From Podarcis pityusensis (taxonomy: Eukaryota), in assembly GCA_964106645.2 (NCBI GenBank), contig OZ067039.1: a DNA stretch of 64,000 nucleotides. The stretch is one strand, 5' to 3'. The notes under the pieces were generated by a model, which was not told the origin of the DNA, did not search any database, and saw only the letters and a list, made by a program, of their open reading frames with translations. Position numbers and translations under genes: made by a program. Positions 43,784 through 44,532 of this stretch are shown here, piece after piece. Numbering within the stretch: the first letter of the stretch is position 1; each line of letters starts with the position of its first letter.

Positions 43784-44532
43784 CAGGGGTCAGCAAACTT
43801 CTTCATCAGGGGGCCAGTCCACTGTTCCTCAGACCTTGTGGGGGGCCAGACTATATTTTGAAAAATAGAAATACCCTGCAAGCCGGTTCTGCAGCTGCCT
43901 CTGGACCTGGAGGAGGAACACACTCTGCATGTGCTCAGGAGCATGTCTCAGTACCGCCCGCTCACCGGCATTGTTGGCAAGCAGCAGCTGTTAATCAGCC
44001 TGTCCCTGCGGAGCTCCCAGGCGGTATGCACCACATGCTGTGGCCCATCGTCCGAGGCCAGGTCTGTGGGCAGGCCGCGCATGCAGAGCGCCGGGCAGGC
44101 AGTGTGCAGCTCATCCTCCAGCTGCTGCAGCTCGGCCGCCGATAATGCCACCAGCGGCAACGCTGAACCAGGCACAGGGCCAGCATGCATGCCAAGCTCC
44201 AGCTGAAGCCCCACGACGCGCCCGTCACAATGCCCATGGTGCAGCCCAGACCTGCCGCCTGCCCACTGGCCTCTCCATCCATGGCCGCGCCGGATTTACC
44301 TCAGTGTGCAGGTGGTGAGGCTTTGGATTGGCTGCGGGAACTTCCTGCAGCCAATCCGAAGCCGCGCCAGCGTCGCTGCCCGCCCAGAGGCACCTGCGGC
44401 TTCTTTTCAAGGAAACGCCGCACCGGTTTAGCTCAGTGCGGGGACTGACTGAGTGGGTGGCAGGGTCTGCAAGCTGGATTTACGAGCCTGGTGGGCCGCA
44501 TCCGGCCCCCGGGCCATAGTTGCCGACCCCTG
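43784..44532. mobile_element. Non-autonomous hAT (Charlie-type) element carrying captured cargo, 749 bp
   Basis: TIRs CAGGGGTCAGCAAACT / CAGGGGTCGGCAACT (rc); perfect 8-bp TSD TTCTAGAA at 43776-43783 and 44533-44540; ends shared with the element at 26093. Confidence 0.93.
43966..44282 (-). pseudogene. SPR: Captured, decayed exon 1 of sepiapterin reductase (SPR) inside the hAT element
   Basis: gcggccATGG start; MDGEASGQAAGLGCTMGIVTGASWGFSWSLACMLA, frameshift, [22 protein letters not shown]...LPTDLASDDGPQHVV...EL, frameshift, QLLLANNA(G)|gtgagc donor. Compare recalled human SPR [21 protein letters not shown]...[22 protein letters not shown]...VPADL...LLLINNAG. Confidence 0.88.

Follow-up and report, generated by a model that had tools for sequence, protein, structure and literature searches.

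A multicopy hAT-type MITE family carrying a decayed first exon of sepiapterin reductase in lacertid lizards

A non-autonomous hAT-type element (MITE) with the first exon of the sepiapterin reductase gene (SPR) between its ends is located at positions 43784-44532 of the window, the 64,000-nt stretch of Podarcis pityusensis DNA analysed here. Most probably (with a probability of roughly 0.88) it represents a Pack-hAT, i.e. a hAT MITE with captured SPR DNA that was amplified by transposition and has decayed since. The copy in the window is situated in an intron of a LARP1-family gene, antisense to this host gene. Its parts, its direct flanks and a cargo-less relative from the same window are as follows.

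43776-43783: left target-site duplication (TSD) of 8 bp, TTCTAGAA, by direct reading the same as 44533-44540.
43784-43865, plus strand: hAT MITE end A, consisting of the terminal inverted repeat (TIR) CAGGGGTCAGCAAA and subterminal sequence, which aligns to cargo-less family members.
43866-43878: filler of 13 nt at the MITE/SPR junction, present in six of six composite copies.
43879-43965, minus strand: first 87 nt of SPR intron 1, captured, including the donor GT at 43965-43964; aligns to positions 4326-4411 of the P. muralis locus L001, adjoining native exon 1.
43966-44282, minus strand: captured and decayed SPR exon 1, 317 nt compared to 325 nt in the native gene, assigned by blastn and BLASTP to P. 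muralis SPR.
44283-44288, minus strand: final 6 nt of the SPR 5' UTR (GCGGCC), marking the 5' end of the captured DNA in the alignment to the native locus.
44289-44464: region X, a family-wide, non-SPR filler that is kept in other copies, with a CCAAT/ATTGG palindrome at 44326-44356.
44465-44532, plus strand: hAT MITE end B, closing with the reverse complement of CAGGGGTCGGCAAC (44519-44532) and aligning to the 3' end of cargo-less MITEs.
44533-44540: right TSD of 8 bp, TTCTAGAA, by direct reading.
26093-26323, plus strand: cargo-less MITE of 231 bp from the same family, with both ends kept, an AT-rich core and the TSD GGCTAGAG / GGCTACAG (7/8).

An 8-bp target duplication and ends starting with CAGNG are hallmarks of hAT transposons, whose short TIRs begin with 5'-YARNG. 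The inverted ends of the element start with CAGGGG..., both CAGGGGTCAGCAAA and CAGGGGTCGGCAAC are of the YARNG type, and a transposase ORF is absent; TSDs of 8 bp occur here as well as in cargo-less members and in four paralogous copies. The hAT TIRs and the perfect 8-bp TSD described in the initial annotation, which was made from the letters of the window only, were found as described, with CAGGGGTCAGCAAA at 43784, CAGGGGTCGGCAAC as reverse complement at the opposite end and TTCTAGAA on both sides. The end motif is observed 7 times in the 64-kb window (0.74 expected), and the contig depth of end A is ~70,000x that of the single-copy flank.

End A aligns with the cargo-less members at window position 26093 and at positions 43103-43422 and 28880-29142 of the P. 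lilfordi loci L003 and L004, respectively. These three members share a layout of an ~88-bp left end, an AT-rich core of ~100 bp and a right end of ~70 bp. In the element at 43784-44532, ~590 bp of foreign DNA stands in place of this core, and the GC content is 64-68% within the element versus 38-48% in the surrounding intron. Both a 231-bp relative with the same ends but without cargo and a GC-rich cargo of about 600 bp had been proposed before, in agreement with this arrangement. The same is true for LARP1 as the host, since the plus-strand gene encodes a La domain (40718-40984) and LARP1_HEAT repeats (at 52752 and 53500).

Further repeats occur in the vicinity. A hAT-like MITE of a different family is located at 62940-63269, extending from CAGGGGTCTGCAAC to the reverse complement of CAGGGGTAGGTAAC with the flanks CTGTAGAT / CTTGTAGA; its subterminal repeats read GAGCCGC, and its GC-rich core (~63040-63210) could likewise be a piece of a CpG island that was captured. 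Positions 45000-46300 are GC-rich as well (maximum 64% GC) with a switch of the GC skew from +0.3 to -0.6, and overlapping repeated ORF motifs at 45623-46293 suggest that a repeat of tandem or duplicated type immediately precedes the next LARP1 exon. An interspersed repeat of ~250 bp, probably a SINE, whose copies are 87-92% identical, was observed at window positions 9758-10003, at many sites of L003 and L004, and inside intron 1 of the native P. muralis SPR gene (L001 4726-4971).

Considering the cargo, the native gene of P. muralis, i.e. of another species than the P. pityusensis of the window, served as reference. Window positions 44288-43879 (minus strand, ~410 bp) are 79.4% identical over 418 nt to L001 3995-4411 (blastn) and comprise 6 nt of the 5' UTR, the entire exon 1 and 86-87 nt of intron 1. 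Native exon 1 covers L001 4001-4325, ends in phase 1 and is followed by GTGAGC, and the window copy keeps this GTGAGC donor at exactly the same boundary (GT at 43965-43964). Reading-frame pieces were searched one by one and never merged into a repaired ORF. In BLASTP, the first piece (35 residues) is 71% identical to residues 1-35 of P. muralis SPR (E 1e-12), and the second matches residues 40-93 at 70% identity (E 5e-21). Downstream of the minus-strand ATG at 44282 (context GCGGCCATGG), the native motifs TGASRGFG, LPADL and LLLVNNA pair with TGASWGFS, LPTDL and LLLANNA(G) of the window copy, and native ALEQLEGEL has a matching counterpart in the cargo. The claims of the initial annotation that the cargo is SPR exon 1 with a Kozak ATG and decayed motifs, and that it ends at a donor at the phase-1 exon boundary, are thus well founded; of the ~100 bp which it placed beyond the donor, ~87 nt are SPR intron 1.

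Host sequence is hence enclosed by intact TIRs and a TSD, and the parental gene is located elsewhere (L001 3995-4411 in the P. muralis assembly). Only exon 1 is present, corresponding to residues 1-108 of 268, and it is interrupted by two frameshifts. Judged from its sequence, the window copy is a gene fragment rather than an SPR gene and encodes no enzyme, the catalytic part (Ser-Tyr-Lys) of this short-chain dehydrogenase being absent.

The SPR match was expected to run into both intron 1 and the 5' flank of the native gene. It does extend into intron 1, but toward the 5' flank it stops 6 (at most ~12) nt upstream of the ATG, and the view that SPR upstream sequence had been taken as well had to be abandoned. 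Region X (~175 bp) was compared to ~390 bp upstream of native SPR of P. muralis and Rhineura by blastn with word size 7 and by Smith-Waterman alignment with shuffled controls, and nothing above these controls was observed. An origin of region X from the SPR promoter was rejected due to this chance-level similarity, and a resemblance noted by eye (GTAAA..CCGGC..GCGGCC) was dropped because it does not exceed chance either. Since the ~175 bp upstream of the exon are not the SPR promoter, the captured module consists of the first exon and its donor without the native promoter. The proposed mobile "ready-made first-exon module" therefore holds for the exon and the donor, but not for the promoter.

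The CCAAT/ATTGG palindrome of region X occurs a single time in the window. A block of ~60 bp centred on this palindrome, GATTGGCTGC(11 nt)GCAGCCAATC, is also found in solitary form at L004 13733-13785, where it lies midway in a palindromic, foldback-like repeat of ~200 bp (L004 13680-13860). In public lacertid contigs, block 44312-44379 reaches ~15,000x the depth of the flank. Judged by this depth, the block is a piece of a separate, abundant palindromic repeat.

One frame piece, searched against 1.8 billion proteins without a profile, yielded 15 hits, all of them short 'hypothetical' or 'SPR-like' proteins of P. lilfordi, P. muralis, Rhineura floridana and Phrynocephalus forsythii; a second protein search added one more P. 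lilfordi copy and an 'SPR-like' model of Zootoca vivipara. Five P. lilfordi loci each contain a composite element that is 75-81% identical to that of the window, and except for L004, which lacks the right end, all of them are full-length. These five copies are located on different chromosomes. In all six composite copies the captured part ends at native position L001 4411 and, unless internally deleted, starts at 3995/3996. Both the X/SPR and the SPR-intron/MITE junctions are identical across the six copies, including the 13-nt filler. Four of the P. lilfordi copies have 8-bp TSDs of their own, namely AGCTGGAG, GTCTGGGG, GTGTGGAC/ATGTGGAC and GTCTAGAA/GTCTAGAT, two of which are perfect and two 7/8.

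In the ML tree, the six copies form one star-like clade (97/95) with terminal branches of 0.13-0.24, which is sister to native lacertid SPR (99/99). This topology indicates a single capture followed by a transposition burst. Capture junctions that are the same, TSDs that differ and the tree together show transposition after capture.

Logan contigs of four runs from four related species were inspected at a likeness threshold of >=80%. The flanks are single-copy, and each cargo site is covered by ~15-35 distinct contigs of 80-90% identity in each species, some of which bridge the MITE/cargo junction, e.g., 43819-44102. Copy numbers derived from these low-coverage contigs at the 80% threshold are rough, and they represent lower bounds because the sequenced paralogues are only 75-84% identical. 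Taken together, the data support a multicopy Pack-hAT family of dozens of copies, and the family claim of the initial annotation is corroborated by five further composites that share both junctions, four of them with different TSDs. In three other species, contigs of >=96% identity span the cargo and the right junction, from which it follows that the LARP1 insertion is common to these species. Among the joints listed for the four species, no empty insertion site was found.

Three other origins have to be weighed against a Pack-hAT family. Individual PDB hits of the two frame pieces are weak (phmmer, E 0.14-0.2), and the pieces, too short and too decayed, gave no Pfam hit, as would be the case for a chance SDR-like frame or a retroposed fragment of SPR mRNA nested in a MITE. 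Nearly all of these PDB hits are to SPR at collinear positions, and due to their weakness the identity of the cargo is settled by the comparison to lacertid SPR (BLASTP and blastn), where the pairwise E values of 1e-12 and 5e-21 speak against a chance frame. A retroposed fragment is refuted by the 86-87 nt of intron 1 that follow the donor colinearly, and no poly(A) was found at the window copy. With the exon 1-intron 1 junction retained, the capture took place at the DNA level, as had been proposed, and the probability of retroposition or of a chance frame is practically nil. A fragment pasted by gap filling into one MITE in place, with no later transposition, would correspond to the commonest origin of animal Pack-TIRs, nearly all of which are single-copy (PMC8277862). 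This scenario is nevertheless highly improbable, as it is refuted by the five other composites on different chromosomes with shared junctions, four of them with different TSDs, and dozens of diverged contigs per genome stand against it as well.

A third alternative ascribes a function to the module: the captured exon with its ATG, its donor and the promoter-like CCAAT palindrome would serve as a mobile alternative first exon or promoter giving rise to chimeric or antisense RNA, and some copies would have been exapted. Gene models speak in favour of it. The first exon of P. lilfordi model P0001 lies inside a copy and ends exactly at the captured donor, with the next exon 40.8 kb away; the last exon of P. 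lilfordi model P0004 is a composite copy; and in the Zootoca 'SPR-like' RefSeq model P0079 the captured exon is joined to a foreign C-terminus. Furthermore, a share of the animal Pack-TIRs is transcribed as chimeras (Tan et al. 2021, PMC8277862). However, all three models are predicted, and the copies show the pattern of neutral decay. Exon 1 of the window copy, which is antisense in the LARP1 intron, has suffered two frameshifts, one by the loss of 7 nt near 44168 and one by the loss of 1 nt near 43993, and the frame is broken in four of the six aligned copies. Compared to the native gene, 45 of 77 substitutions in the window copy (58%) are changes of CpG to TpG or CpA, the CpG count has decreased from 70 to 23 and the GC content from 80% to 65%. 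Differences from the native gene fall on codon positions in the order 1 >= 3 > 2, i.e. with no concentration at third positions, and within the captured part the exon is at least as divergent as the intron. Judged by these substitution patterns the copies decay neutrally, and a functional module appears quite unlikely.

In P. lilfordi, the parts of gene models that use the captured exon are situated at L003 2501-2779 and 43558-43674, where the donor is used as well, and at L004 41798-42079. The chimeric models of P. lilfordi and Zootoca are likely to be either annotation artefacts or real chimeric transcripts.

Returning to the Pack-hAT, its history may be reconstructed as follows. In an ancestor of lacertid lizards, one MITE copy would have lost its ~100-bp AT-rich core, and the core would have been refilled by double-strand-break or gap repair with template switching. 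One template would have been the SPR locus, providing 6 nt 5' of the ATG, exon 1 and 86-87 nt of intron 1, and a second, non-SPR source would have provided the ~175 bp of region X. The resulting chimera with both transposon ends was presumably mobilised in trans by a hAT transposase, and a burst of transposition gave rise to dozens of copies with individual 8-bp TSDs. One of them was inserted antisense into the LARP1-family intron before the sampled species diverged. Later on, the presumably methylated DNA has decayed neutrally by CpG loss, indels and frameshifts. With foreign DNA in place of the MITE core and a short filler at a junction, the element agrees with gap filling and template switching as modelled for Pack-TIRs, with ordinary hAT transposition afterwards (Tan et al. 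2021, PMC8277862). No clear microhomology was found at the capture junctions inspected; one of them contains the 13-nt filler, for which neither the cargo-less MITE nor native SPR gave a match. Instead of the native locus, an already rearranged SPR copy could have been the source.

SPR exon 1 is carried by hAT-type elements outside the lacertids as well. In the amphisbaenian Rhineura floridana, L007 2400-3395 (CM057606.1) is a 996-bp element (sequence label CAGTGGCGTACC...) with the ends CAGTGGCGTACCAAG / CTAGGTACGCCACTG and the perfect TSD TATAAAAC, which RefSeq lists as 'sepiapterin reductase-like'. The cargo shares 85% identity with SPR of the same species and extends from 14 nt 5' of the ATG to ~1 kb into intron 1. 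Three elements of the agamid Phrynocephalus forsythii contain SPR exon 1 at 81-89% identity to their own native gene:

L010 2264-3409: ends CAGTGTTTTTCAACC / GGTTGAAAAACGCTG, perfect 8-bp TSD CACTAAGT.
L011 2004-3565: ends as in L010, perfect 8-bp TSD CTCTAATT.
L008 2215-3540: ends CAGGGGTGGCGAAC, perfect 8-bp TSD TATAAGTG.

The element of L008 shares an internal piece of 56-70 bp with L010 and L011 despite its other ends and may be hybrid or nested. A fourth SPR-exon-1 fragment of this species is P0032.

In the ML tree, the copies of each lineage group with their own native SPR (99-100), and the capture breakpoints differ among lacertids, Rhineura and Phrynocephalus. From both observations it follows that different hAT families have taken up this exon on at least three occasions. 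Such a threefold capture in lacertids, an amphisbaenian and an agamid points to a susceptibility specific for the locus or for its promoter. All three independent captures start shortly before the ATG, at -6 to -12 in the lacertids, -14/-15 in Rhineura and -9/-10 in the L010 family of Phrynocephalus, and end within intron 1. In lacertids and Rhineura, a conserved TATA-like motif, GCGTAAAAGCGCAC, precedes the start by ~30 nt; in P. muralis the start coincides with the position where the GC skew becomes positive and the GC content reaches 80%. One may speculate, at rather low odds, that capture is non-random and that repair synthesis proceeds from the TSS onward with an R-loop or nascent unspliced RNA as template at a GC-skewed CpG-island promoter. 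If so, squamate hAT MITEs would systematically sample 'TSS-to-intron-1' modules, which would explain why the SPR exon was captured three times. For annotation, 'SPR-like' and 'hypothetical' proteins in assemblies of Podarcis, Zootoca, Rhineura and Phrynocephalus call for caution, as they represent transposon cargo.

Cut-and-paste transposons that take up pieces of genes contribute in a major way to exon shuffling in plants. Pack-MULEs, known from rice and further plant species, resemble the SPR element in that GC-rich gene fragments are enclosed by transposon ends, have been amplified and take part in chimeric gene models, but they belong to the Mutator superfamily with TSDs of 9-11 bp, long TIRs and plant hosts. 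They are reportedly biased toward GC-rich 5' ends of genes. Closer to the present case, extraneous 'filler' DNA is taken up by hobo/hAT elements of Anolis carolinensis (Novick et al. 2011, PMC3014272), and these lizard hATs were amplified after the acquisition as well; their filler, however, consists mostly of other TEs, and neither 'exon' nor 'host gene' occurs in the text of that study.

For 100 animal genomes, 370 Pack-TIRs were described, 208 of them hAT (Tan et al. 2021, Nat Commun 12:4280, PMC8277862). Only 4 (1.4%) are multicopy, and nearly all are single-copy and have arisen without transposition. One example is Pack-hAT-N8_XT of Xenopus tropicalis, which carries 291 bp of the CAPSL 5' UTR and has spread to three chromosomes (PMC8277862). 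The terms 'lizard', 'Anolis' and 'reptile' are absent from the main text of that paper, and neither a capture of SPR nor a lacertid Pack-hAT was found to be described in the literature searched. The SPR element has the properties of these animal Pack-hATs, i.e. it is a non-autonomous hAT, its interior is the 5' end of a gene and its copies have distinct TSDs. It differs from them by at least six sequenced copies and ~15-35 contigs per genome, by a cargo made up of an entire coding first exon, the adjoining donor and part of the intron, and by the independent capture of this exon in three squamate lineages. Capture of gene fragments in animals has been regarded as a rare event that hardly ever yields more than one copy. 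The SPR element is a vertebrate Pack-hAT with dozens of copies, whose cargo comprises a complete first coding exon and its splice donor, and this exon has already entered some annotated gene models. As a kind, the Pack-TIR is already known; the SPR Pack-hAT is new and unusually amplified.
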